Assembly (NCBI RefSeq): GCF_006345805.1
Contig: NC_043006.1
Span: 99,262,001 to 99,326,000, forward strand
Reading direction: 5' to 3'
From: Octopus sinensis
Lineage: Eukaryota
DNA: 64,000 bases
The notes under the pieces were generated by a model. That model was not told where the DNA came from and ran no database searches. It was given only the letters and a program-made list of their open reading frames with translations. The position numbers and the translations under genes are program-made. Below are positions 3,393 to 64,000 of this stretch, one piece after another. Position 1 is the stretch's first letter. Each line of letters opens with the position of its first letter.

Positions 3393-6300
3393 GTGTGTGT
3401 GTATGTATGTGTATTTTCGTGCACTATGTACCTGTGTATGTATACGACAGCATTATTGCACTTCGTTTTGGCGTTCCTGAATATGGCCAATCCTTATGTT
3501 TATTAGTGGAAAACATTACATTTAAATATTAGCTAATGCTAACAAAACGCTTCGTTTGATAATTTGCGTATGCGTGTATTATGAAGACGACGGGATGGTG
3601 TTTAGAGTAGGTGTTATGTAGATCATTGACATTACCTATGTTCAATGTAGTTACGTAAAAGAGTAAGTGATATCTAAGGAAGACTTATTCTAATTAAAAT
3701 TGCTGGGATACCTATGTGCTCAAAGGAATTGTTTGAAATTTATTTATTTATATTGAATTCACCCACATTGACTGTTTGGTTGAATATTAGTGTTATTTTA
3801 GTTGGGGTATTTCACATGGGTGAACGTTTTGCATCTTTGTTAATATGAGATAAATATTTATTAACGATTCACCTAGCCAAATGTTTAATTTTGACTCTGG
3901 ATTTTTACATATGTTTTTTCCAAGACATACTTGCTTGTGAGTGTTGTTTGTGCTTTCTATAATTTATTGAATGCTTCCTAAGAATGCCATGAGTCATTAT
4001 CCGTGGTGAATTCTTATAGCTATTTCCCTCTATATTGTGTAATTTATGAAAAGAGAGATGATTGTCCTTATGATGTATATGTAAAACTATGTATTGGACT
4101 GCTGAGACAAATCAAGTCATTAATATTCAACTTACTTTGAGTAATGTCTTTCCATGAGATGGTAATATTGCGTGCAAATTTCTTCAATGCCTTCGCGTAT
4201 ATTCAGTAAAGCTCCCCACCGCCGAGATTTATAGTCATATCACCCGGAAGCGCTCCACTTGGAGAATAATTGTGTGTCGAATCTACAAGATTTTACCGAC
4301 ATTCCCTTTACAACTGTTCCTTCTTCATGTGAGACCTACTGTAATCATAATTCCTTTATTCAATATATCTACACATACATATTCATGACTGCAGAATAAC
4401 CTCATTTTTTTTCGAATAAACCTTATTTCTTTTCTGCCAGGCTATTCAGCACCACCGGTGGTGTTATGATGATAGACGTTAACACCTCTGTGTGATGAAA
4501 AGAGGGACTCGTTGAACTCTTATAAAGAGTAACGTTATCGCTGAGACGACTGAGATGGTTTGCAGTCTTGCATAGCAATTGTCGAAGTACGTCTTTGAGT
4601 ATTTGCTTTACCCCTGATTCGTTTAAATAATATATCCAAAACACAAGGACGTAAAAGTTAGCGAACTTTCCTTATTGCATTATGTCAGGGCGTTATTTAA
4701 CAACTTCAAAATCTGTTCTAATAACCTTTATAGTTTGGGGTGTGGATATGTATTAAATGATGTTGATTATGTAGTACCATGAGTGTTGATCATAATCTGC
4801 TGACACTATTGGTGGTGTATATATTGGATTAGTATAGAGATTAATTACATCGTATCCGGTAACTTTCAGGTAAATATTGATCGAGAAAAAAATGCTTACA
4901 CTCAATCTATGCAAAACCTACCTGTCTGATGTCCGAGGTCATGCGACTGACTGTAATCTATTTAATTTTCGCTGTAGTTATATACAGTCAATATATTACG
5001 AAAAGGCGTAATGGATTTAATTCAGGATTGAAACAGCAACTCTGAAACCAAATGATACAAATATGTCCCGAATCTCGTAGTCTACAGATCTCAATGGAAC
5101 ATGAATCATTCCGTACAAGTAAAATTTTGACAGTAAATCCAGTTTATCGGAATCTATTCATCAAAGTTGTCTTATGTCCAACATATCAAACAGAAGGAGA
5201 GGAAATGGAGAACCATAATATCGAAAAGTGTCGTTAGCTACATTACAATGTTACACGTAATTTCATATGCACCAATTTAAAAGTTGGCATCAATCGTTGT
5301 AGAACTACGAATACAATAACAATATATTGTGGTTAACGTAGCTTAGCAGAGTAAAAGAAAACAAAGAAAATATCGGAAACGATAGAACCAGTATTAGCCA
5401 GATTTCAACCAATGTTCTTTGTTTGGATTTAAAATAAATTGTTCTTTCTTGTAGAGGAAATTCAAAGGAGATCTACACAAATTGTTTATTCTTTGTACAG
5501 AATGTAATAATTTCTTCACTAACTGAACATCCAATACACTCAAGTTTGATGCATAATGCTTACATGCCTTGCGTAGGAAATGAAAATGTCTTTCACAAAT
5601 TGTGAAGACTATAGAAGTTTCAATTTCCTCAACAAATTATACCATACCCTAATTCAATATTTGTTTAGTGAATGCATTGACATTTTAACAAAAGAAAAAT
5701 GAGTACTTGATGAATGTTTTCAAACGTAACATCCAATAGCTATCCAGTTTGGGAGAATGTGTGTAGTGTTTTTAAATTCACGTCTAAATTAGTACATACG
5801 GTTATTGTCAATAATATTGTGATATTTGTTTCTGTGATTTGCCCTACACAGAATGTTTATTTGGAGTGCGCTCTAAGATACGCTTATCTAGAATTGATTC
5901 AACTAATTCAACAAAAGATTGAAACGCATTTCAAAGCTTAAAAATGGCTAGTGAAAGGATATAATGATAGTTCTCGGATAATGACACTTCGGTATCACCT
6001 TAAGCAGTGCTTATTCAAGAATGGCATTTATATGTATTGGCATGAAAAGAATATTACTTAATTCAATGTAAAGTGGATTATGGCAGAACGATTAAGAAGC
6101 TCGGTTCGCAATAAAGATGACCCGTGTTCAGTCCCACTGCGTGCCATCACGCACAAATGTTAATTGATTTTCTGGTTGAAACTACGTAAATAGAAAAATT
6201 ATTAGAAGACCATCATATACAACCCACATGCCGTTCGAAGTTACTGCATTATCACATGCTCTGCCACTGATCCTGGTTGTAAATTATGATAATAATAGCA

Positions 6301-13975: not shown

Positions 13976-14724
13976 AGGAAATATTAAACCAGGAGCTTGA
14001 CACACAAAGAGTTAGAGAGAAGCAGAGAAAAGGAGAGCAGCGAATTACTTTTGAAAATGTGTTTAGATTTCCATAATTATCTGAAATTTTAAAACCGTTA
14101 GCAATGTATTCTTGCAGAAGTATCTAAAACAAATTTCATAAACCGTATTACTCTACGCCATACTAAGTCCTGCATTTATAGGACTGCATTTCATAATATA
14201 AACTCTTTGCTCTATGAAAGTGTAACACTTCCATGGTAGATAAGATTGTCCAATTCACTCTGATGTACACACTTATAGATAGTGTCACTCGTGTTTAAAA
14301 TCGTTGGCACTTTAAAAGATTTTGGACAGCATAATCACGATTTTGGAGAAAAAAAATATTTAGGAAATTAATATTTTAGGAATTTCATTGACTGTGCGCT
14401 TTAATTAGTAAGGGCGTTCAAAAAATGGACTAGTGTTGAATTTTATATATGTAAGCATCATTATCTTCAATAATTCATGCAACCTCAATATGAAAACACT
14501 GGGCAGATGCACCATATGTTGAATAAGCTCTCAGCATAGATTATGATATACTTGCATGTATAATTCCAGAGGTTGAAGCCTGATATCTTAACTTTTCCTT
14601 TCTCAAGTTGGTGTTAGTTTAATATAAATATTACTTGGCTTTCTATTGGTCTATGATGTTCCGCCGCAATAGATGAAAAATTGAAAACCGTGTAAATTCA
14701 GAGCCAGTGATCCGATACCGATGA

Positions 14725-15122: not shown

Positions 15123-15229
15123 TGTCGGTAGTAAAGAAATATACATCTACTGGTGGATCAGAGATAAAGGGTCAATATTTATCGAACATTATATGTACTA
15201 TTTATCACACGGGAAGTTATTGAAACAAT
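15123..15229. repeat. 107-bp inverted duplication of 16003-16109
   Basis: Reverse complement of 16003-16109 with 3 mismatches; includes the last ~20 nt of the neighbouring SINE tail plus its flank. Confidence 0.95.
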
Positions 15230-15536: not shown

Positions 15537-16091
15537 GTAGTTATATAGGCACATATATATATATATGCATGTGCGCGTCTGTGTGCATGAATTATATTGT
15601 ATATATAATGTAGTTTCATGATTCCATTTACTTTAGCGTGTATTTTGTTTTAACTAAAAAATATTGCATTTATAGATTTTTCTCTATCCCTATGCATGAT
15701 AGGAAGAGTAGAAATTACTGCTGAAAGAAACATTAAAATAATTAAATCAGACGGCCTGTCAAAATATTGCGAGGGTTCGTTATTGAAATTAATTTGCCTC
15801 GACTGCTTCATGAAAAGAAACTGTTTTACTGATTTTTAGAATATGACAGATGAGATTGCGTGCAACAGACGTTATTTTCAGTGACATTAAATTATTTTTC
15901 CTAATATCTCAGCTAAAACGCGCTGGAATAGGAAAATAGCGCTGATGCTTAAAATATCTGACTATGTCTCTGATATTTGAGTTCAGGTTCGAAAGCTTTT
16001 GTATTGTTTCAATAACTTCCCGTGTGATAAATAGTACATATAGTGTTCGATAAATATTGACCCTTTATCTCTGATCCACCAGTAGATATAT

Positions 16092-16269
16092 ATTTCTTCA
16101 CTACCGACAAGGGGCTAAACACAGAGGGGACAAACAAGGACAAACAAACGGATTAAGCCGATTACATCGACCCCAGTGCGTAACTGGTACTTAATTTATC
16201 GACTCCGAAAGGGTGAAAAGTCGACCTCGGCGTAATTTGAACACAGAACGTAACGGCAGACGAAATACG
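16092..16269 (-). mobile_element. SINE body and tail (head C), interrupted by the Tx1 LINE
   Basis: B-box region, central GTCGATAAATTAAGTACCAG domain (resembles the Meta-domain; inference) and tail ...GCCCCTTGTCGGTAGTGAAGAAAT. The head continues at 21621-21684. Confidence 0.9.
16254..16269. repeat. 16-bp target-site duplication (left copy; right copy 21621-21636)
   Basis: CGGCAGACGAAATACG is present exactly at both ends of the LINE. Confidence 0.95.
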
Positions 16270-16516
16270 AATTTCTTTATTGCCCACCGGGGGCCAAACA
16301 TAGATATGGACAGTACAACTGATGGGATCAGTGAATCGATATGATTTTACATAAATGTGACATCAAAAATAAAATACAATACATAAAAATCGAATGGAAT
16401 ACACAGTACAAAAACAATACAATGAAGCGATGATCAAGTTACGCTCCGATCCCACAAGCCCCGATCTACCGCTGATACCTTTTTATTTTTCCTTTTTTTT
16501 TTTTTTCCTCGTCTAT

Positions 16517-19500
16517 TCACACGGTTCCTTGCACGCACAACACTCGTGCAACATACTTCCATCTCTTTTGGAACGTACACTCTGACAGACACCTCTTCTC
16601 CAGCCACAGTTTCCTTTTCAAATGAAAAGAAAAAAAGGATCGTAAATTGTCACCAGAGATAAAGTTGCCTGTCTTAATTCCTTTTATCCTAGTATTCCAT
16701 ACAGCCTCTTTTGCTATTGCTACAACCGTGAGAAAACAATTCTTACCTTCGTTCGTTAGAACTCCCGGTGGGTCAATTTTTATAATTGACTCAGTCGACA
16801 GCCGTACTCTTCCTTCGCCGGACAACAGATGTTCAGCATAAGCCCACATTTCAGTTATCTCCGGACACTGAACAATAGCGTGAGGGACGGTTTCCCTGTC
16901 CCCACCGCATCTTGGACAGGTCGGCGACTGACGTTTACCATGTCTTGCGAGCTTATCCCAAACGGGCAAGGCACCTCTGTAGCATTGCCAGGTTAAGGAC
17001 TTTTGGAAGTTGTCCAACGTTCTCAACCCGAATGTACGATGAAACAAGCTGTCCAGTTGAATAAATCCGAGACCTAGAGTCGACCCCAGGCCATCGTCGC
17101 ATTCAGACTCTACAACCCACTATATAAAATCCGTGTGGAACCCCCACCGCTGGCGTTGCCCGAGCGCCGGAACAGCAAGAGGGCCTTACGGCACTCTTTA
17201 TGCCACTCACTCGACCTCGGTCTACGAGAACACCAGGCTTCCTGTTCGCAAAAACTCTTGAACTCAGGGAACATTTGTCTGGCCAGCGGAGACCACACCC
17301 GTTCACTATCCAGGAGAATCCAGAGGTGCCTCAACCTCAACGCATGTCTGCGCATCATTAACCAAGGCATCCCTAAACCTCCATTTAAAGGCTTTTGACA
17401 GCAGACAGAGCGTTTCACAAGTGGCGACCTGCCCTTCCACAAAAAGCGAAAGAGCTGTCTCTCCAACCTGATCAACCACGAATCCGGACAGGGCACGACA
17501 GTCAGGCGGTAGGTAATGACCGATGCGATAAACACATTGGCCACTTCCGCCCTCCCTTTCAGGGATAGCCACCGCCAAGACCAAGTCTTGACTACTGCAG
17601 CCACCCTGCTCAATACCTCCGTCCAGTTCTTCTCTATCTGGAGGCCTGGTCCAAACCAGACTCCCAGCAACTTAACCGGTCCCTCCGTCCAGCGCCTAAC
17701 AACACTGTCTGAAGGCATCGACTTGCCAACCCAGGTGCCGAGCTGCAAGCCGACCGACTTTTCCCGGTTAATCTTTGCTCCTGCTACCTCCACGTAAGCC
17801 TCAATAGTCTTACCTACTTCACGTAGGCGTACCACTGTGGTTACACTGATAGTGATATCATCCGCGAAAGCCGTAACAAACTCCTCTAGTCCTGGTTCTC
17901 TCGGGATGCCACTCAACCTTTGCAGTAATGGCTCGAGAGCCATCACATACAAAAGTGGTGAAAGCGGACATCCTTGACGAACCGAGCGTCTGATGCAGAA
18001 CGGCTTCGAAAGGAAACCGTTCACCCGAACTATCGAGTCAATGTTGTGGTACAAAGCGATAAACCACCTGAGGAAGCCAAGGCCCAGGCCAAACCGCGCA
18101 AGTACAGTCGCTAGGTATCGATGGTCAACCCTATCAAAAGCTTTAGACTGGTCCAAATGCACCAATGCCCCACCTTTGCCAGATTTATTACCAAACCTCT
18201 CTATGGTATAGCGAATAAGATGGAGGGTATCCTGAATGGTTCTGCCTGGGATGGCACATGTCTGTGCCTCCCCGACTATACCATTCGCGACACGCGCCAA
18301 CCTTTTTGCTAGAACCTTGGCCAAAATCTTCACTTCTGCGTTAAACAGAGTGATGGGCCTGAAATTCTCTAGAACGTCCCCCTTGTTCGGGTCCTTTCTG
18401 ACCAACGTCACTACTCCCCGGCGCACAGATCTGGGGATAAACCCATTCTGTTTCCAGTTCGCGTACACGTCAGTCAGTAGTTGCCCGAACAAGTCTGGCA
18501 TACATTTATACAGCTCGTACGGAAGACCATCAAGTCCCGGTGACTTACCCGCTTTACAATCGGCCAAAGCCTCCATCACCTCCTCAAGTGTGATTGGCCC
18601 TTCGCAAGACTCCGCATCCGACCCCGAGAGGCACGGCAGCCCGGTAAGAAAGTCCTCGAGGGCTCTCCCACCACCAGGACCGCCGTCACCCCCCGAACAG
18701 CTGGGCGAAGTACTCCCGAAAGACCTCACACATTTTCTCGGGTTCGTTTATCAAGACACCATTTTGATTCGTCAAAGACCGAATAGAGGAACTATTTCCT
18801 TGTCGAGCTTCCACCACTCGGGCCCATCCAGCGGCTTTGATTCCTTCACTTCCCATTGCACGTAACTTAGCTCTGGTAATACTTCCCATGTGGTGGGCTT
18901 CAAGATGCTGGTTTAACTCCAGTCTTTTCACCCTCGCTTGGTCTGTATTACCAGTCCTCCAGGCTTCTTCTAGTTCCTTAACTAGACCATCTCCTATTTT
19001 ACGTCCCTTCTTAGCTAAACTTATGCTAAACCTAATAGACTCATATTTGATGGCTCTTTTTAGGGCGTACCACCATTTGTTATTAATGATGGTACCTGTT
19101 AATGCCCTCTGTATTAACATCTTGATCCGCTTTCTGTACTCCTCAATCGCCAAAAGGGACGTATTGAGTTTCCAGTAGCCAGATCCCTGTCTATGCAACT
19201 TATCTACCGTCAGTTTACAGGTAACCATCTTGTGGTCACTGTAGCTGACTAGAAAAAACTGTGGACACTCAACTATGGACTTATCTTTTTCTCTAATTAA
19301 AATCCTATCTAGATATGTTCTGGTAGACCCGTCACTATTTGACCACGTCCACTGTGGAGTGTTCGGGTGCTCCAACCTATATGGATCTGCTAGCTGAAAT
19401 TGACTTAGCAGATCCCGAAAGCCTGTGTTACATTTTCTGTTCATGTTCGAGTTTGAGCCAACACAATCTGTGTGTGCTGCTCATATTGTATTAGAGTCTC

Positions 19501-19917
19501 CTAACACTACTAGTGAATGCGACGTGGCTAGGAACTTTCCTAGGCCACGAAAATATTCAGTTTGCGGGCCAATAATGTTTGGTGCATAAATAGCGACCAG
19601 CCTGATTGTCTTGCCACAACTGAATGTCAAGTCGAGAACGACCAGCCTGCCTTCTGGGTCAGAAAAAACCAACTTTTTCTCGGCTACCCGGTTTCTTTTT
19701 AGTAGGACCAACACCCCACCCCCACCTCCCGCCCGACTCGGAGAAACGTATTTCTCGTAGCCGTTCAGGAGGGGGAGCAGATCTCTTGGCCCCTTCACCC
19801 GGGTTTCCGTTGCAACAATTACATCCAAATTTCTCGACCTGATGTCATTCAGAAAGCGTCCTTGCTTCCAGCTTGACAACAGGCCATGAACATTAAACAA
19901 CCAATGTGAATAGCCAT
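16517..19917 (-). pseudogene. Tx1 ORF2 (AP endonuclease, reverse transcriptase, zinc finger)
   Basis: MAIHIGC(L)/NVHGL...ETR...AIYAPN...LGD...YLDRI...SDH (APE); KSPGLDG, FRPITL, DQSKAFDRV, RQGCPLSPLLY, AFADD (RT); CPRCGGDRETVPHAIVQC. Lesions: frameshifts near 19890, 18700 and 17112, and an in-frame stop at 19481. Confidence 0.92.
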
Positions 19918-19928
19918 CACTTACCTGT

Positions 19929-21457
19929 TTAATTAGGATTGTCCGGTGGAGGGGGACCCTCCACCTTTTTTTTATCCAGGGTCGGAGGTGGACGGTCTTG
20001 GGAAATAGATTTGTCAAAATCCCGTCTCACCACCGACACAGAATTATCAGGTGGAGGGGGAATCTCCACCTTTTCCTTTTCTCGCGGGATCGGAGCTGGT
20101 AATCCATGAAATATCGACTTGTTAAAATCTAATCTCAATGAAGATACAGTCTTTCTGTACTTATTTTGTAGAATTCTATAAGTCTTATTTGAGACTTCAT
20201 ATATGTCGTAATTGATAAATTCCTCTGAAAGGTTATCAATTTTTTTTATAGTCTTTATGAGTTGAATGTCTCTCATGAGCTCAGTATCTGTAGTGTATAC
20301 GGCTATTATGCCTTTTTCTTCTTTTTCTCTTCTGGCAGTCTTTTTTGGTCGTTGTTCTGTAGTAGTCGCCGCTCTCGGCTGGGTTGCTGGTTGTATTTTT
20401 CTTTTGTTTGTTGTTTTTTTCTCATCTGTTTCTTCTTTATCTTCTTCCTCTTTATCTTTTTTCTCCTCTTCCTTCTCTTCTTCATTTTCCTTGCAGTTCC
20501 TTCGAATGTGGCCTAATTGACCACATAAAAAACATCGAGGTTTTCGGCCCTCAACAAACACCACGAGGTTCTCCTCCCCTACCTCAATTGTCTCAGGAAT
20601 TGTTTGAATTATTTTAGGGTCCGCTTGAATGAGAAGATTAATTGTTTTACCATCCCAGCGTGGGTTTTCCGTAGCGGTAGCCTGGAGGAGAGTAATTTTT
20701 TCTACCTCTTTGATTAGGACTGCCGCCAACAACCACATAGGTTCGACCTCTGGCGGGACCCTTGTAATTTTTATTCGCGACGTCCTCATCCCCATATAAT
20801 AGGGTATTAACTCCACGTCGTTCGTTTTCAACGTTTCCACTGAGTTCTTGTGTGCTATTTCTTTATTGGTGAACCTTACTTCCACCGTTCCGAATTTTTT
20901 TCCTCTTCTCAGAAATACTACGTCGCCCAATATTGGCTTTAAGCACTTTTCTATTTTCTCTTCTGACATTCTTTCAATTTTTCTATTTTGTAGACAATAT
21001 GTTTTGAAAATTATTGTTTTTTGCTTTTCTTCCTGTAATAACTTTTGCGGAGGTTCAATTTTCACACTGTTGTCATTTATTTCCATCATTTTGCTGTATT
21101 TCATAATTTCGCTTTTATTCGTCGACAGTGTCTGGGTTCCACCCCAGCAGCCAACGCAAAACTTTTTTTCCCATTTTTTGGTTCTATCTGGATGCTAGGC
21201 ACATCAATTATTCTCTTCGACACAATGCCTTTGTTCTCTGGCAAAGTCGGAAACTCTTCTGGTGAAAGTTCTGACGAGCTCTCAGACACATCTCCAAAAA
21301 TATCAAATATATTATCCTCTCTGCTATTCCTTCTTGTAGCGGGGGAAACCCCTATTTCCTTGTCTGTAGTTGGCTCCTCGCCGGACATGTATTTCCTCCT
21401 CTCAACAGGAGAAACAAGTATTTCTGCTCCAACGGTAGGCTCCATGCTAGACGACAT
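19929..21457 (-). pseudogene. Tx1 ORF1 (RRM-like region plus single CCHC zinc knuckle)
   Basis: CFLCGQLGHIRRNC knuckle followed by an acidic/basic low-complexity tail. Split into two frames near 21100-21150. Confidence 0.85.
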
Positions 21458-21620
21458 TCTTCCCCCAAAGGGGGAATGAACAACGCGTGCTACCACAAGC
21501 ACTAAGTGTTTTCAATTGAAAACTCCAACAGTTAAGTTATTCAACAGTTTAACAAGAAACAACAGTTGTTAACAGTATTAACACCACGAAACAGCAATTC
21601 TTACTTCACGAACACATGTG

Positions 21621-21684
21621 CGGCAGACGAAATACGGCTAGGCATTTCGCCCGGCGTGCTAACGTTTTTGCCAGCTCACCGCCT
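21621..21684 (-). mobile_element. 5' head of the SINE interrupted by the Tx1 LINE
   Basis: Minus strand GGCGGTGAGCTGGCAAAAACGTTAGCACGCCGGGCGAAATGCCTAGCCGTATTTCGTCTGCCG joins seamlessly to 16253 and below. Confidence 0.9.
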
Positions 21685-21999
21685 TATCCACAGCAGATAT
21701 ATGAAAGGAACAAGATCTGTACAATCTGACACTTTCGATTTTGGGAGAAAGAAATTTTAATTATTTCATGCTGCAAATTTATTTAATGCTGCTCAATTTC
21801 GATATCATTAAACTTGCACGCCATTATTCGTTTTCAAATGAAAGGTATCGTGTTCTAATTTGCCTCAGTGTAGATGAAAGAGAATGTTTTACGTCGCTAG
21901 AAGAGTCTTAAAAATATCAGCTTCAGTGACTGATCTTTTTCAACCCTAACTGTATTTCATAATTTTGAAGTGGGATTAAACTATCTTGCATTCTTTTAT

Positions 22000-22462: not shown

Positions 22463-23579
22463 ATTCATATCGATCAATTATAAGATTTGACAGCAAAAAT
22501 ACTCGTGTTTTATACCAAACTCTCTTCGTTAAAATGTTAAAACCTCTGAGTATCCCCAATTTATAGAAGTTTGATTCTCAAATAAGATAATGCGATTAAT
22601 ATATTAGCATCAATGATATATTTTCTGTTACCACCCGTAAATGGACATGTGCATTCGATATTCAGCTACTATTTTATAGAAATTTTTGTTGTGGTATCCT
22701 TAAACAGTCCAACTTATAATTTCTCCGCATCAGCGAAGGCAGAGGTATTGTTTTCAGTCGTGTTAATTTATTTATTTTTTTTTTTTGCCGTAATCAAGAT
22801 AACTCAAGAGCCGCTCAATGGATTCAGATAAAACTTTCAGGGATGTTTGACCCTATGATTGGCATGAACTGATTAAATTTTGAGATAGATCCGGTACTAA
22901 ACAAGGATTCTGGATTAATTTTCGTGTTTTATTTTTAGCTTAATTTTTGAGAGCGGTCGCGTTCATTTTTAGTATTCTTGTTTGTGACAACAGTCAAGTT
23001 TATTTCAGATTTTCTCATTTCAAAATTAATCTCTGCCTAATCGTTGAGAAGACGTTGGTGTTGCCTTCGTGGAGGTTTGCACTCTCTGAGTTCTCTTGGT
23101 ATTTTGAATTTTGTATTATCATTACTTTAGAATCTGTATATGCGACATTGCATTTCGTAAATCTCTGAAGGGACTATTTTCTTTATTTCCAAATTCTATT
23201 ACGTTATAAATACTCTTGGGTACCGAGTATTAAGTGGTGTCATATATTAATAAAGTATTTGGGTATCCATATATATTTATTGTTACAAATGTTTAAAAAT
23301 TTTAATTTGGGGAAAATTTTCCGATTGATCTATCAGAATAAATTACAAATCGAATCACAGATGTGCTTTTCATCAATCAGCTTCAATTATAATTTATGTT
23401 AGAATAGACACCTTAACTCCTCTTACATAATGTCAAGAACAAAACTTATCTCATTATGGGGTATAAAATTATTACTTATTGCTATTAAATAACAAGAATA
23501 CCTTTGCTGATTTTAGAAGTGTGTCAGTTTCATAGTATCCTAGATTTTCACATGTTTCTCAATATTTTGTTACTTGTTG

Positions 23580-23785
23580 AGGAGGAGAGCTGGCAGAATC
23601 GTTAGCACACGGAGCAAAATGTTTAGCGGTATTTCACACGCTCTGAGTTAAAATGTCACCAGTGTTGACTTTACGCTTCATCCTTTCGGTATTGATAGAA
23701 ACAAGTGCCAGTTAATTACTGGAATTGATGTAATCGACTTGCAGTCTCCTCGAAATTGCTGGCCATGTTTTAAAACCAATACTTT
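23580..23785 (+). mobile_element. SINE, head C family
   Basis: GAGCTGGCAGAATCGTTAGCAC head, central TTCATCCTTTCGG...GATGTAATCGAC domain, non-Tx1 tail. Confidence 0.75.
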
Positions 23786-23896
23786 GTTGTTTGTTTCTAT
23801 GTGCTATTTTGTGTTTCAAAAATGCTACCAGAAGAGCACAACATATCCGCTTCCGTATCATATCCGCTAAAACCCAAGTAATATGAGAGAAACCGG

Positions 23897-24436: not shown

Positions 24437-25134
24437 AAGTTTATATGAGAAACCATTAACTTGTCAGATTCTTATAAAGTCTCAACGACATAAAACTTTA
24501 AAATGCTCATATTTTTTTCTCTTATTTTATTTTTTATGCAATTAGCTTTGTGTATACATAATTGATTCTTTAAAATAAATTATACATTCTTGCACGAATA
24601 ATATTTATATTCGCCCCCTACGACATCTTAGTGGCAATACCTTTAAAACATCACTGAAAAAATATATGGGATGTATTTAAATATATTCATTAAATATATT
24701 CACTGTACTAGTGATGTTGTGTTCGCGAGGAATATATTTAATAATTTTTTACAAATAACTACATTTTTTTAATTTCCAGTTAATATTTTAATATTGTACG
24801 AAGGAATTTATCTGCATTTGATTGTATAAATTCTTTGTATATATTCAACGACATCGAATATTACTTCATATTTTGAAACATGAATTGTTTCAAGGAAAAC
24901 ATAATTTTATTAGTATCTAAATGTGTGAAATATGGTTAACGTGAAGAGAGATACAATGAATGGATCAAACTTATTTCCTTATCAAAAAAGCAGTAAATGA
25001 TTTTATAAAATCCACTTTCCGTTGTTTAATTGGTGTAAATTATACTCAATATTTGCACTTCTACTTCCATATCGGTTACCTTATTTTATTTGGCCTTATT
25101 CGAATTGTGTCAAGTTTGACATCCATTTTCTCGG

Positions 25135-25325
25135 GTTTGATAAAATAAGTACCAGTTGAATACTGGGATCGATGTAATCAACTTATCTCCCAACTCAAAT
25201 TTACTGGCATGTTTAGCGGTATTTCGTCCGTCTTTACTCTCTAAGTTCACATTCGACGGGTGTCGACTTTGCATTTCATCATCTCGAGATCGATAGAATT
25301 AATAGTATTCACGCACTGGAGTGGG
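25135..25325 (+). mobile_element. two abutting head C SINE fragments
   Basis: AATAAGTACCAGTTGAATACTGGGATCGATG followed by GTTTAGCGGTATTTCGTCCGTC. Confidence 0.6.
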
Positions 25326-26059
25326 TGTTATCTACGTACCTTTTCTGCAGAACCTGCTATCATTTTTCCAAAGTTTTGAAACGATATATAATGTCTTATT
25401 TTAAAAACTTCGCAGCACACGATTGTTAGTTTGGGCCTACTTAGGCAGAGAAATAAACAGACTCTCAACTTGTTTGAACAGAGCCAGAGACGAACAGGAA
25501 GAAATGATACCATGAAAATAAATAATTACTGAGCTTATTTCGTGCAACAAAATTTAATAAGCCGTTGCTGCGGCATGGCCATTGTCGGGTGACTGAAGAG
25601 CTAAAAGAAAGGAATACACATTAATTTCTTTGTATGGATACACCAGCAATTGCGATCTTCAATATCAATTTAATATTATATATGACTGTTTATTGTTTGC
25701 AGTGTAGCAATTGTATTATATCAAACTATTTGTTATTGCTTCCCTATTACACTATATTCTAACGAATGCATGTTAAGACTATGATTTTCGTAGATTATCG
25801 GATTATGACAGTTCGAACGTTTGAATATACGAAGTTCGTTCGAAACGTTTCAGACAATATGTTTTCCTTCCAAAAGTAATGTCACGTGGCCAAACTCCTT
25901 TGGGTGGGAGACGACACCACTCATCATTTGCGCCAGTAGGCCTCAACTCCCGGATTTTATGCCTAGAGTACAGACGTGTAATGTACGTAAATAAGATTTT
26001 CGTTTGCACACAAGACGATCGAACACATGTAGCAGAGACCGCAAAATATGTCTCAACAA

Positions 26060-53244: not shown

Positions 53245-53440
53245 TTGGAACAAGGTTGGCAAGTTCATAGGAGAGAGGAAGTCTACGCCAGTGCTCAACT
53301 GATGCTTATTTTATCGTAAGCGAAAGGATGACAGTTAAATTCTATCTCGGTGGAATTTGAACACAAAAATTAAAGACGAACGAAATGCCGCTAAGCATTT
53401 TGCTCTGCGTGCTAAGGATTGTAGCAGCTCACTACCTTTT
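53245..53440 (-). mobile_element. degenerate SINE, head C family
   Basis: Minus strand GTGAGCTGCTACAATCCTTAGCACGC...GCTTAGCGGCATTTCGTTCGTC; non-Tx1 tail. Confidence 0.7.
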
Positions 53441-55201
53441 TCTGGTAATATATGTGACACCTCGGAAGAAACAGTGTCCATATACGCATTTCATATTCTT
53501 TCAAAATGTGTATAGATATGTGGAAATTTGTTTCAGATTGACAAAACCATACAACAATCTTTTGTTAAAAGAAATGAGCTGTTGTTTCTGTTGTGATGGG
53601 ATCTGCAATGCCACCTTGCGGCAGATAGACTGGCCCGAGTAAAGTATAAGTAGTAACGATCCAGGTGATTTAGAGGTTCAGAGTTCGGAGTCAAATGAAG
53701 TTCGTGTTATTTCGCAATGAAGTTAGAAGGTGTCGGTTTACAAAGAATATTGATTGTTGGTTCGTAAAGAGATTTGTTAGTCCGTTACATTATGCCAGAA
53801 TACATTTCTGCAGTGACTGTCGAATACTTTAAGGTTAGTCATAATATTGTTATGATTATATCATTAGCGCCCATTCTCTCTTCATAATTTGAATGTAAAC
53901 GTCCTGGGCGTTTCTGTCAGATTGAGTGACTAGTCAAAAAAAAACAAAAGACAACAACAAGTACACTTACGCGGAATGTTGTAGATATTAGTTGAATCGA
54001 ATTCGAATTGTTCAGTTGATGATATGAAGGAAAATCGCTGCAGTACATTACATACGTTGTAATGATTTTAACCAGATGATTGTATATGATTCGTTACAGA
54101 GTACTGTGGAATTTTATATGCTACGATAACTTGATATTAATTATTCATCTATTACAGTACTGATATCAAATTCAACGTAAAGAAAAGGCACTGCAAATGG
54201 AATCTAAGATTTCTTCTCTGTATACACAGAAATCCATGGACTTGATATAGTGCAACACACAATATTTACAGTATGCATGTTAGATGAATAAGTTAATTTT
54301 AATTTAAATGTCACGAAAAATAAACTACAGCATGAAATTACAATGGCAGTGATACGGTAATAAGTATATGGGTGGAGACATTACATTAAAGTGCAAAAGT
54401 GCATAAGGCGATTACATAATTCTTGCATTATAAGTAATATCATTTACACGCTATGCAGAATCAAATAGGCCTCCAACTTATAAACTTTTATAGACTAATC
54501 ACTATCAGCTATACTAACCTTACAGTATCTTCAGTCAAGCAATCGCCCGTATATTCATGAGGCTTAAATACCAAACACCACATCGATGCATTCAAGATTT
54601 TTAAAAAAACTGTTAAATGAAAAGAAGGAAGAGAATAAAAATTAAAATTGGGAATACAAGGTACCGGTATATAATATGAGGAGCATTTATATTTAAAGCC
54701 AATAAGCTCCTAGGGGAAATATAGAGAACAAAAGGCCGTCATGGTTTACTGGAGGACTGAATGTTGACGCCAAATTATTAGTGAATGCCGTGCTTGGAAA
54801 GACCTTTTCTCTCTTGAAATTAACCAAGATCCATATACAGATTATACGAATCAATATCACGCATACGTGTATCTATCAAGTTTTAATTTGATCACAGTTT
54901 ATTGAAGAATAACAAACATTTGGAGTAAATTTATACCAAAGCTTCACCAGATTTATAGATTACGCAGTGCAAATGCTTGACACAATTTGCCCAGAAACAA
55001 AGAATTATTAATGGATTTAACCTTTTGAAAATACAACGATATCTGTCTAAATTTGGTGGATACCCTATCAAAATATCTAGTAGCGTACCCTGAGATAAAC
55101 ACAGCATTTGCGGAAATACTGCCTGCATTTCATACGCATCGCTTGTACAACGAAAGGGCATATTCAAAAATTGACTTTTGAAATGATGATAACTTTTAAT
55201 G

Positions 55202-63954: not shown

Positions 63955-64000
63955 GTGGTGAGTTGGCAGAAACGTTAGCACGCCAGGCGAAATGCTTAGC
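63955..64000 (+). mobile_element. SINE head C, cut by the window edge
   Basis: GGTGAGTTGGCAGAAACGTTAGCACGCCAGGCGAAATGCTTAGC matches 21637-21684 (-). Confidence 0.85.

Follow-up and report, generated by a model that had tools for sequence, protein, structure and literature searches.

A likely site-preferring L1/Tx1-type LINE of Octopus, with a shared-tail SINE as its probable passenger and target

The LINE and its host SINE

The window, by which is meant the whole 64,000-nucleotide stretch of Octopus sinensis DNA that was analysed, contains a 5,351-bp LINE on the minus strand (16270-21620), bounded by an exact 16-bp direct repeat, CGGCAGACGAAATACG (16254-16269 and 21621-21636), which cannot be extended on either side. 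The LINE lies in a SINE of the same orientation, its insertion point having an A-box-like motif (TGGCAAAAACG) on one side and a B-box-like motif (GTGTTCAAATTAC) on the other. When the LINE is excised and one copy of the repeat is dropped, the SINE is restored and aligns without gaps to the other heads in the window. The features are listed here with the basis of each in brackets; L026 and L027 are further copies of the LINE, described below.

16074..16091, minus: host SINE target duplication, 3' copy, ATATATCTACTGGTGGAT (read from sequence)
16092..16253, minus: host SINE B-box-like motif, conserved body and LINE-like tail, ...TGTGTTTAGCCCCTTGTCGGTAGTGAAGAAAT (sequence, tail alignment)
16254..16269, minus: LINE 16-bp target duplication, downstream copy (exact repeat)
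16270..21620, minus: full-length L1/Tx1-type LINE, 5,351 bp (Pfam domains; full-length identity to the L026 and L027 copies)
16270..16317, minus: LINE 3' tail common to the SINE tail at 16092-16137 (36/48 identical)
16517..20017, minus: ORF2 with APE, RT and zf-RVT domains, broken (Pfam, comparison of copies)
16517-17047, minus: zf-RVT, C-terminal zinc-binding motif after the RT (PF13966, E 1.5e-8)
17110-18729, minus: reverse transcriptase domain (PF00078, E 3.9e-30)
19481-20017, minus: APE endonuclease domain (PF03372, E 7.5e-7)
19929..21104, minus: ORF1, 391 aa, intact, with CCHC zinc knuckle (Pfam; 97% identical to an O. vulgaris protein)
21621..21636, minus: LINE 16-bp target duplication, upstream copy, CGTATTTCGTCTGCCG on the minus strand (same sequence flanks the L026 and L027 copies)
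21637..21675, minus: 5' part of the host SINE head with A-box-like motif, ending ...GGGCGAAATGCCTAGC at the putative nick (alignment to other heads)
21676..21692, minus: host SINE target duplication, 5' copy, ATATATCTGCTGTGGAT (read from sequence)
23575..23790, plus: unoccupied SINE whose head is of the same family, with the other tail; site GGTATTTCACACGCTC (head alignment)
53270..53445, minus: unoccupied SINE of the same head family; site GGCATTTCGTTCGTCT (head alignment)

The LINE starts with CACATGTGTTCG... and ends with ...GGGCAATAAAGAAATT, without poly(A). The host SINE is itself inserted into ordinary DNA, and the two copies of its own duplication (21676-21692 and 16074-16091) differ by one substitution and one 1-nt indel. 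Octopus SINEs are called tRNA-derived in the literature. When all of the heads were compared with tRNA models there was no ARAGORN prediction, nor any Rfam match even at E<=10, so that a tRNA origin of the head is possible and unproven, resting only on the motifs and the literature. Other heads in the window carry variants of the site, with GGTATTTCGTCCGTCT at 25218, GGCATTTCGTTCGTCT at 53389 (minus strand) and GGTATTTCACACGCTC at 23628.

ORF2 of the window copy is interrupted by a stop codon at LINE nucleotides 2138-2140, an additional nucleotide at 2927 and a missing nucleotide at 4507. All three lesions are private to this copy, and the frame-breaking lesions differ between copies. The solved structure nearest to the RT is human L1 ORF2p (E 2e-42, with R2 at 5e-21). 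The features expected of the L1/Tx1 group, namely an N-terminal APE and an RT in ORF2, a zinc motif after the RT, and a target duplication of about 10-20 bp, are all present, the duplication being exactly 16 bp in both the window and L027. Placement in the Tx1 clade rather than the L1 clade is possible and unproven, there being no RT phylogeny with Tx1 references. The evidence for it is indirect: ORF1 has a CCHC knuckle and no match in Pfam to the L1-type Transposase_22, and the only L1-type label in the octopus repeat literature searched is 'L1-Tx1', for elements averaging about 5.4 kb. Nearly all RT database matches are unnamed, and none is labelled Tx1 or L1. In O. vulgaris, 13 recently active L1-Tx1 families account for 421 insertions and 2,288,644 bp (PMC13282606), a mean of about 5.4 kb per insertion that matches the 5,351 bp of this element.

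The tail of the SINE subfamily corresponds to the last ~48 nt of the LINE, with which it shares the terminal GAAAT(A/T). The two are identical at 36 of 48 positions, and the local alignment score of 20 compares with 6.7 +/- 1.4 for shuffled sequences, none of 5000 shuffles reaching 20. A LINE/SINE pair in Argonauta shares its tail likewise, at ~90% identity. The tail can be folded into only a weak consensus hairpin (-3.5 kcal/mol), with changes on both sides in just one base pair. In sharing its tail with the end of a LINE, the SINE has one of the features expected of a LINE-dependent SINE. That the SINE is reverse-transcribed and mobilised by the LINE protein is inferred, with indirect support from the common terminal GAAAT(A/T), the common site and the same first bases at insertions away from it; there is no retrotransposition assay.

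A first-pass annotation, made without database searches, had described a LINE splitting a SINE between its boxes, in the same orientation and with an exact 16-bp duplication, which holds, provided that the boxes are called only box-like motifs. Its tail comparison (~42 nt at about 74%) and its claim that differently tailed heads have another sequence at the site also hold. It had called the SINE tRNA-headed, which the tRNA models do not support, and the LINE a Tx1 element, for which there is only the indirect evidence above. The start of the SINE is corrected from 21684 to 21675, since 21676-21692 is the SINE's own duplication, and the head at 63957-64000, which had been flagged as stopping near the site, is merely cut by the end of the window.

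Insertions at the same position in other SINEs

That one insertion alone proves no specificity had rightly been conceded, and other copies of the LINE were found by ORF1 protein similarity, a search that is blind to the flanks. The resulting sample is three copies of the window family and one junction from each of two relatives, and is not a genome-wide census. Two full-length copies are on two other chromosomes, of Octopus vulgaris: L026 (OX597815.1), 99.3% identical to the window LINE, and L027 (OX597817.1), 97.6% identical. The three agree exactly at both ends, 5' and 3', and in the 16-bp duplication, CGTATTTCGTCTGCCG, and each is inserted at the same nucleotide of a SINE head in the same orientation. 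The three loci are unrelated, as are their non-SINE flanks. The O. bimaculoides relative (L028) has the 3' junction ...GGGCAATAAAGAAATT followed by GGTATTTCGTCTGTCT, in a host SINE with another tail. This LINE is 5'-truncated with assembly gaps and has no SINE head upstream, so that only the 3' junction can be counted. The second O. vulgaris LINE family (L029), with an ORF1 48% identical, begins directly after ...GCTTAGC GGTATTTCGTCTGTTA, placing its 5' junction at the site.

In the 147 kb of octopus DNA sampled, five out of five LINE junctions are therefore at the SINE-head site; an identical site in L027 (23697) is unoccupied. The sharing of insertion point, orientation and duplication is shown. 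By Kojima's working rule, in which one sequence type in more than 20% of flanks indicates a target preference, the LINE qualifies, on a small sample.

It might be proposed that the nesting is due to chance, with at most a weak preference for AT-rich or TAT sequence, in a genome of which SINEs make up more than a tenth, and with the shared tail reflecting an ordinary partnership. In favour of this, SINEs account for 11.6% of the O. vulgaris genome (PMC13282606), the host SINE itself lies in ordinary DNA with the duplication ATATATCTGCTGTGGAT, there is a single event in the window, and the Argonauta relatives have only a TAT preference at the junction. It is, however, contradicted by the additional loci, since two further copies of the same family, the O. 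bimaculoides relative and a second family are all at the same nucleotide in the same orientation. The roughly 25 instances of the site in 2 x 147 kb of strand would give a probability of about 1e-4 per random insertion. The 10-mer GTATTTCGTC is SINE-associated in 16 out of 16 occurrences in the sample, but TATTTC occurs 250 times, with only about 20 of these in heads, so that a hexamer preference alone would place only ~8% of insertions there. Chance nesting is therefore very unlikely. The Argonauta relative (60% amino acid identity), with its short TAT preference, does not use SINE heads, so that head specificity is not a trait of the whole lineage.

Alternatively, a block of SINE head, LINE and SINE body may have formed once and been copied, by segmental duplication or as a retrotransposed read-through transcript primed at the SINE tail, the junctions being inherited. 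Around every composite there is the target duplication of the host SINE itself, as there would be around a retrotransposed composite, and the SINE tail is sufficiently like that of the LINE that it could prime reverse transcription. Between loci, however, the SINE flanks differ by 4.8-8.4% and the LINEs by 0.3-0.5% (0.32-0.51%; Fisher p 2e-8 to 2e-14), a ~15-fold difference in divergence for the same locus pairs. Differences between the host heads appear within 5-11 nt of the junction, L026 alone has an additional SINE unit and a 12-nt deletion, the L028 host has a different tail, and a different LINE family occupies the same site. In addition, a transcript from the SINE head would have to cross TTTT runs in the LINE 5' UTR. 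A copied composite can be given very little credence. The divergence of the flanks demonstrates separate hits on old SINE copies, and it is shown that the host SINEs are independent of one another and older than the LINEs.

The SINE uses the same position. The first-pass annotation had predicted the junction ...AAAGAAATA followed by GGTATTTCGTC... in head-to-tail SINE arrays. This was seen five times, as tandem head-less SINE units, and L026 and L029 have such arrays with AAGAAATA followed by GGTATTTCGTC. Among SINE tails of the LINE type in the 147 kb, 5 out of 11 are at the site, followed in each case by different host sequence, and the remaining 6 adjoin TAT-rich non-SINE DNA. On this small sample the specificity of the SINE RNA is shown to be a strong preference, not an absolute rule. 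The target is the head irrespective of the tail of the host SINE, as the other, common tail is present in the L028 host and in the final units of two arrays. With five LINE and five SINE junctions at one position, together with tandem insertions, the two elements can be considered to share a target. Some arrays could have multiplied as dimers already formed, without a separate insertion for each. The tail in common, the junctions in tandem and the off-site target motif are shown, and the earlier suggestion of self-targeting is supported, on a small sample, a small-scale test of LINE junctions having given the same nucleotide throughout.

A third alternative is that a founding insertion spread by gene conversion or ectopic recombination through the SINE flanks, with no need for a site-specific endonuclease. 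Repeated sequence surrounds the LINE (about 50 + 160 nt), neither the junctions nor the 16-bp repeat vary from copy to copy, and SINE-in-SINE events seem to use homology on the 5' side. Against this, the host SINEs start to differ from one another 5 nt upstream of the duplication and ~10 nt downstream, which would require conversion tracts ending almost exactly at the LINE. A second, distantly related LINE family and the head-less SINE units share the 3' junction point, and off-site SINE insertions share the first bases of the site, as would be expected from a single nuclease preference. This explanation is also very unlikely.

Proposed mechanism and its significance

The evidence favours a young, sequence-specific L1/Tx1-type LINE of Octopus that homes to one position in a SINE head, with the shared-tail SINE as both passenger and target, a reading that is likely within the limits of a small sample. 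The LINE integration machinery would nick one defined position in the head of an abundant octopus SINE family, between ...GAAATGCNTAGC and [C/G]GTATTTCGTCTGYC in the orientation of the element, with a second nick 16 nt downstream, so that the site would be duplicated and not destroyed. That the endonuclease reads the site is inferred, without biochemical evidence. A LINE in the head separates the A-box-like and B-box-like motifs of its host, which should silence that copy.

For a SINE landing at the head site, only the 3' junction (tail followed by GGTATTTCG...) would be visible, the 5' side merging seamlessly with the host head, most likely through annealing of the cDNA to homologous host sequence. 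Such homology-driven joining is an inference. Insertion at the site would generate head-less site-body-tail units in tandem behind one head. Away from it, the SINE enters TAT-rich targets whose first few bases are those of the site (TATATC, TATATT, GGTATAAG, TGTACA), arriving at full length with its own 12-18-bp duplication and so seeding a new head and landing site. That this amounts to a self-renewing safe harbour is also inferred.

A bolder reading is that octopus SINE expansion has been driven in part by a closed loop, in which the LINE homes into the promoter region of a SINE family that it mobilises, every insertion duplicates the site, every off-site SINE copy seeds a new one, and SINE-into-SINE insertion adds a LINE-compatible body and tail to a head already in place, by which differently tailed SINEs become new sources for the LINE. 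This might as readily prove wrong as right. If it is correct, the LINE cultivates its own safe harbour, and this could explain the division of octopus SINEs into hundreds of 'unclassified' families by annotators.

The mechanism proposed is concrete and testable, for both tandem and chimeric SINE structures in octopus genomes, and bears on the exchange of SINE tails. For repeat annotation in octopus, site-body-tail units and SINE/LINE/SINE composites should be treated as products of insertion, not as separate families. The LINE would also provide a natural APE-type endonuclease of compact size, apparently recognising at least 10 nt (though without biochemical evidence), that is relevant to the retargeting of LINE integration.

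Comparison with known systems

Target-specific LINEs are already known in rDNA, small-RNA genes, microsatellites and other transposons. In the literature searched there is no description of a LINE that targets a SINE mobilised by that same LINE. A target inside the mobilised non-autonomous element would, if true, be a new logic, in which the parasite's parasite is also a habitat that grows with the parasite.

R2 and R1 in rDNA (cited in PMC4494074) similarly have a dispensable multicopy target as a safe harbour, and co-transcribed or homologous target sequence aids their precise junctions. R2 uses a restriction-like endonuclease and has a host-gene target, whereas the octopus target is another selfish element, dependent on the LINE. 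Stringent LINE/SINE pairs such as eel UnaL2/UnaSINE1 are similar in that the final tens of nucleotides of the LINE are also present in the SINE and neither element ends in poly(A) (Ohshima and Okada reviews, PMC3747384, PMC4824008), but no targeting of the SINE is reported for the pairs in these reviews. Tx1 in Tx1D of Xenopus, Keno in U2 snRNA genes, and Kibi and Koshi in microsatellites are, like the octopus LINE, APE-type elements of the L1/Tx1 group, mostly full length and in one orientation in a defined multicopy target sequence (PMC4494074). They differ in that no target named in the text consulted is a SINE apparently mobilised by the LINE concerned.

The closest precedent is that of the crocodilian Tx1-Mar LINEs and SINEU-3, which have a common target sequence in a repeated element with a ~16-bp duplication (Kojima 2015, PMC4494074). 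Tandem SINEU insertions 'sandwiching a TSD' are common, and the shared target was used to infer the mobilising LINE (PMC4494074). As in Octopus, a target-preferring LINE and a SINE insert into the same repeat sequence, with a duplication of similar length and tandem SINEs. The crocodilian target is, however, Mariner-N4_AMi, a DNA transposon with no relation to the pair, and the SINE head is derived from snRNA, whereas the octopus target is within the SINE's own head, which would mean that amplification of the SINE makes new targets and that insertion of SINE into SINE gives seamless head-less units.

The LINE and its host SINE

The 16-bp direct repeat on either side of the LINE, the common orientation of LINE and SINE, and the break between the two box motifs had all been claimed in the first-pass annotation (exact TSD at 16254-16269 and 21621-21636), and all three held when checked against the window sequence.

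Features of the LINE and its host SINE
16254-16269 and 21621-21636: 16-bp direct repeat CGGCAGACGAAATACG, not extendable by one base on either side
16270-21620, minus strand: LINE, 5,351 bp between the repeat copies
LINE leader: 516 nt
LINE ORF1: 391 aa, intact, with a CCHC knuckle
LINE ORF2: APE endonuclease, reverse transcriptase and zf-RVT motif
LINE 3' end: ...GGGCAATAAAGAAATT, without poly(A)
21676-21692 and 16074-16091: the host SINE's own duplication, slightly decayed (ATATATCTGCTGTGGAT and ATATATCTACTGGTGGAT)

If the LINE is excised together with one copy of the repeat, a SINE oriented like the LINE is recovered, and it aligns without gaps with the window heads at 23580, 25214, 53438, and 63957. 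The break point, referred to here as the head site, has an A-box-like motif on one side and a B-box-like motif on the other. The SINE has a target duplication of its own, and so sits in ordinary DNA and predates the LINE. No head is recognised by tRNA models (ARAGORN; Rfam at E<=10), and a tRNA origin of the head, while possible, therefore rests on the motifs and the literature only.

ORF2 of the window copy is disrupted by one stop and two frameshifts. The nearest solved structure to its reverse transcriptase (RT) is human L1 ORF2p (E 2e-42), with R2 at 5e-21. Protein cluster look-ups returned no Tx1 or L1 label able to settle the clade; the LINE is of L1/Tx1 type, and its membership of the Tx1 clade is a possibility without phylogenetic support. 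At the 3' end of ORF1, a 42-nt direct repeat (19935-19976 and 20040-20081; identity 81%, spacing 105 nt) encodes a proline-rich motif, PPPPDN, in repeated form and is present in all three copies of the LINE (window, L026, and L027, the last two from O. vulgaris). There is also a 107-nt inverted repeat, 97% complementary, at 15123-15229 and 16003-16109, with 773 nt between its arms. Part of one arm is formed by the final 18 nt of the host SINE tail and its 3' flank; the other begins abruptly beyond a (CA)n(TA)n run. The repeat looks like a small inverted segmental duplication that postdates the SINE insertion.

The LINE and SINE share a tail. Over their last 48 nt, 36 positions are identical, and the local alignment score of 20 compares with 6.7 +/- 1.4 in shuffles, none of 5000 attaining it, so that the match claimed earlier (about 74% over some 42 nt) held. 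In Argonauta hians, a 60%-identical LINE (locus L001) and the local SINEs have ...CTGTGTCGGCCCTTGTGGCTAATAAAGAAATC in common at ~90%, and a third LINE with this tail was found on a short JGI contig. A hairpin can be drawn from the tail consensus; it is weak, with almost no covariation. The LINE 3' end showed no microhomology to the nicked target.

LINE insertions at the head site

Chance nesting, in which the LINE would have entered a SINE as it might any other sequence, looked at first to be the simplest explanation. The window has only one copy of the LINE, the predicted junction of tail to GGTATTTCG is found nowhere else in it, the host SINE is not itself inserted in a SINE head, and SINEs make up 11.6% of the O. 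vulgaris genome (PMC13282606). The contexts in Argonauta pointed the same way. Of 12 LINE-type tails in the whole 22 kb of L001 (BAAFZT010000001.1), 9 are followed by CTAT, with target duplications starting TAT, and one SINE has the duplication TATTATCTTTnTGCC, so that the TAT derives from the target. At 14810-15310 of L001, two tandem SINEs surround the duplication TATAGryCAGCAC, like the crocodilian SINEU-3 tandems of Kojima. There is no use of a SINE head at junctions in L001 or in four other contigs (L002, L003, L023, L024), where the context is only TAT or (ATT)n. In L003 (JGI metagenome 3300045642, 2019-2105) a related LINE of 63% amino acid identity ends ...GGCCAATAAAAGAAATC, directly followed by (ATT)n that reaches the contig end; the (ATT)n may be a microsatellite target or else a tail of repeats.

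One match to the predicted junction, at window 36389, falls outside SINE sequence and was rejected as fortuitous. Contig L025 from ENA, whose RT is 48% identical, was dropped, having no octopus SINEs; viral contigs scanned with the tail patterns gave chance hits only, and metagenome scans with protein patterns and then with the exact LINE tail gave no match.

Chance nesting, favoured initially on the contigs found by RT and the ordinary target of the host SINE, was overturned by loci found through ORF1. The RT protein search had no close relative (best identity 63%), since no ORF2 protein has been called in the genome of the window itself. With ORF1, O. vulgaris proteins of 97% and 96% identity were found, with others at 71% in O. 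bimaculoides and 48% in O. vulgaris, and the DNA around these matches provided four further octopus loci (L026-L029).

Full-length copies of the window LINE
L026, OX597815.1: 99.3% identity
L027, OX597817.1: 97.6% identity

In both, the LINE starts CACATGTGTTCG, directly after ...GAAATGCGTAGC CGTATTTCGTCTG(C/T)CG of a SINE head in the same orientation, and ends ...AAAGAAATT, adjoining CGTATTTCGT..., the remainder of the same SINE. In O. bimaculoides (L028) an 81%-similar LINE ends ...GGGCAATAAAGAAATT directly against GGTATTTCGTCTGTCT of a host SINE with the other, common tail; its 5' side, being truncated and interrupted by gaps, is uninformative, leaving only the 3' junction. In L029, from O. 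vulgaris, a second LINE family starts directly after ...GAAATGCTTAGC GGTATTTCGTCTGTTA. All five examinable LINE junctions are therefore at the head site, which meets, at a small scale, the earlier proposal that junctions of other copies be compared. Since the octopus sample, 2 x 147 kb counting both strands, has some 25 instances of the site, a random insertion would hit one with a probability of ~1e-4, and the additional loci all but exclude chance nesting.

It could instead be that a composite SINE/LINE/SINE block has been copied around the genome. Outside the SINE, the window, L026, and L027 have only dispersed repeats in common. The SINE halves differ by 4.8-8.4% of aligned bases and the LINEs by 0.32-0.51% for the same locus pairs (Fisher p 2e-8 to 2e-14), and frame-breaking lesions are private to each LINE copy, demonstrating separate insertions rather than a copied composite. 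This 15-fold gap, the different tails of the host SINEs, the extra SINE unit in L026, and the use of the head site by another LINE family leave almost no room for composite copying. The window, L026, and L027 are three separate, recent LINE insertions into three old SINE copies.

The single-base frame-breaking indels differ in each of these LINE copies despite only 0.3-0.5% substitutions; indels are over-represented, and assembly error may account for part of this. In L026, the downstream copy of the LINE target duplication (14465-14480) precedes a deletion of 12 nt (CTGCCGTTACGT) that is bounded by two CGT repeats, and the upstream copy has one substitution (…TCTGTCG). Public annotations (P0225-P0228, P0181) name ORF1 fragments 'ABC transporter F family member 4-like', 'EPM2A-interacting 1-like', and 'K02A2.6-like', and exact look-ups of the window ORF1 and P0181 gave no match. 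An ORF2 C-terminus of 61% identity has been assigned to a Herbaspirillum MAG, where it is likely to be cephalopod contamination.

SINE tails, arrays, and the target

Eleven LINE-type tails are present on SINEs in five octopus sequences, so that the sample is only these and the five LINE junctions. Five of the eleven (L026 14633; L029 7823, 7640, 9666, and 11475) are followed by one A and then GGTATTTCGTC... and the remainder of a SINE, the downstream host sequence being different in each. These five units lack a head, begin at the site, and are stacked behind one that they share. Two arrays end in a unit with the other tail, which identifies that unit as the original host. The tail-to-site junctions and head-to-tail arrays predicted in the first-pass annotation are thus found in L026 and L029. 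The other six are on full-length SINEs, each of which has a 12-18 bp duplication of its own. These duplications start TATATC (twice), TATC, TATATT, TGTACA, and GGTATAAG, with first bases as in the head site. The data thus show a common position, orientation, and duplication, insertions that are independent of one another, a shared tail, and the arrays.

Gene conversion might also have spread the LINE between SINEs. This seems unlikely, as differences particular to each host begin 5-11 nt from the LINE, the junction is common to unrelated elements, and off-site targets have the same leading bases.

In the octopus sample, GTATTTCGTC is SINE-associated in 16 of 16 copies and TATTTC occurs 250 times, so that recognition must exceed a hexamer by far. 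The LINEs of the window, L026, and L027 all occupy the CGTATTTCGTCTGCCG variant, the one that accompanies the LINE-type tail. Relatives occupy GG variants in SINEs with the other tail; a preference of the family for its own SINE subfamily, suggested earlier, is no more than hinted at (roughly p 0.04, from a count of heads). An imperfect palindrome at the nick (GGCGAAATGC...GTATTTCGTC) folds as DNA no better than shuffles (z -0.2 to -1.5), and no role was assigned to it.

Other rearranged SINEs were noted. At L029 9669-9790 the host unit of an array is internally deleted, ...GGGGTCGACTTTGCG running directly into ...TACTGGAGTAGAGCTAATCGG, and the near-identity of inserted unit and host unit extends from the site as far as about +55, exceeding the 16-nt duplication, which could reflect homology-based joining or later conversion. 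At window 25096-25340 two fragments of other-tail SINEs are joined head to tail, the start of the second lying only ~8 nt upstream from the LINE site (…ACTGGCATGTTT/AGCGGTATTTCGTCC), with ATGTTT common to both partners; this is a microhomology junction near the head site, not at it. A full-length LINE-tailed SINE at L027 7786-7897 has its body split by a palindromic insert of ~125 nt that looks perfect (GGGCACTGTCGTGCTTTTAGTTGTCAGGAG…CTCCTGACAACTAAAAGCATGACAGTGCCC) and has CAGTTATG on either side; it is most likely a small MITE.

Proposed mechanism and known systems

Nuclease specificity, mobilisation of the SINE in trans, joining driven by homology, and the feedback loop are inferences only. 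The endonuclease, or the whole integration complex, would probably nick just 5' of (G)GTAT(T/A), with the full head sequence strongly favoured. A second nick 16 nt downstream would duplicate the site and so leave it usable again. The LINE would insert at full length with a clean 5' end, parting the A-box-like from the B-box-like motif, which should inactivate that SINE copy. When SINE RNA is copied at the site, the cDNA would be homologous to the host head and its 5' junction may be resolved without trace by annealing; this would explain the head-less units, and the resident head would gain a new body with a tail of LINE type. Insertion away from the site would spread complete SINEs and with them new sites.

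Target-preferring LINEs of the Tx1 clade include Tx1 in Tx1D, Keno in U2 genes, and Kibi and Koshi in microsatellites (PMC4494074). A LINE targeting the head of its own SINE family was not described in the full-text literature searched (Repbase entries were outside its scope), and two octopus repeat papers (one of them PMC13282606) mention L1-Tx1 and SINEs with no target analysis in the passages searched. The closest system is that of the crocodilian Tx1-Mar and SINEU-3, both of which insert in Mariner-N4_AMi with a 16-bp duplication and tandem insertions around it (Kojima, PMC4494074). The octopus pair works in the same way and is likely to represent this known type of co-targeting, new in that the target is the head of its own SINE family, whereas in crocodilians it is Mariner-N4_AMi.
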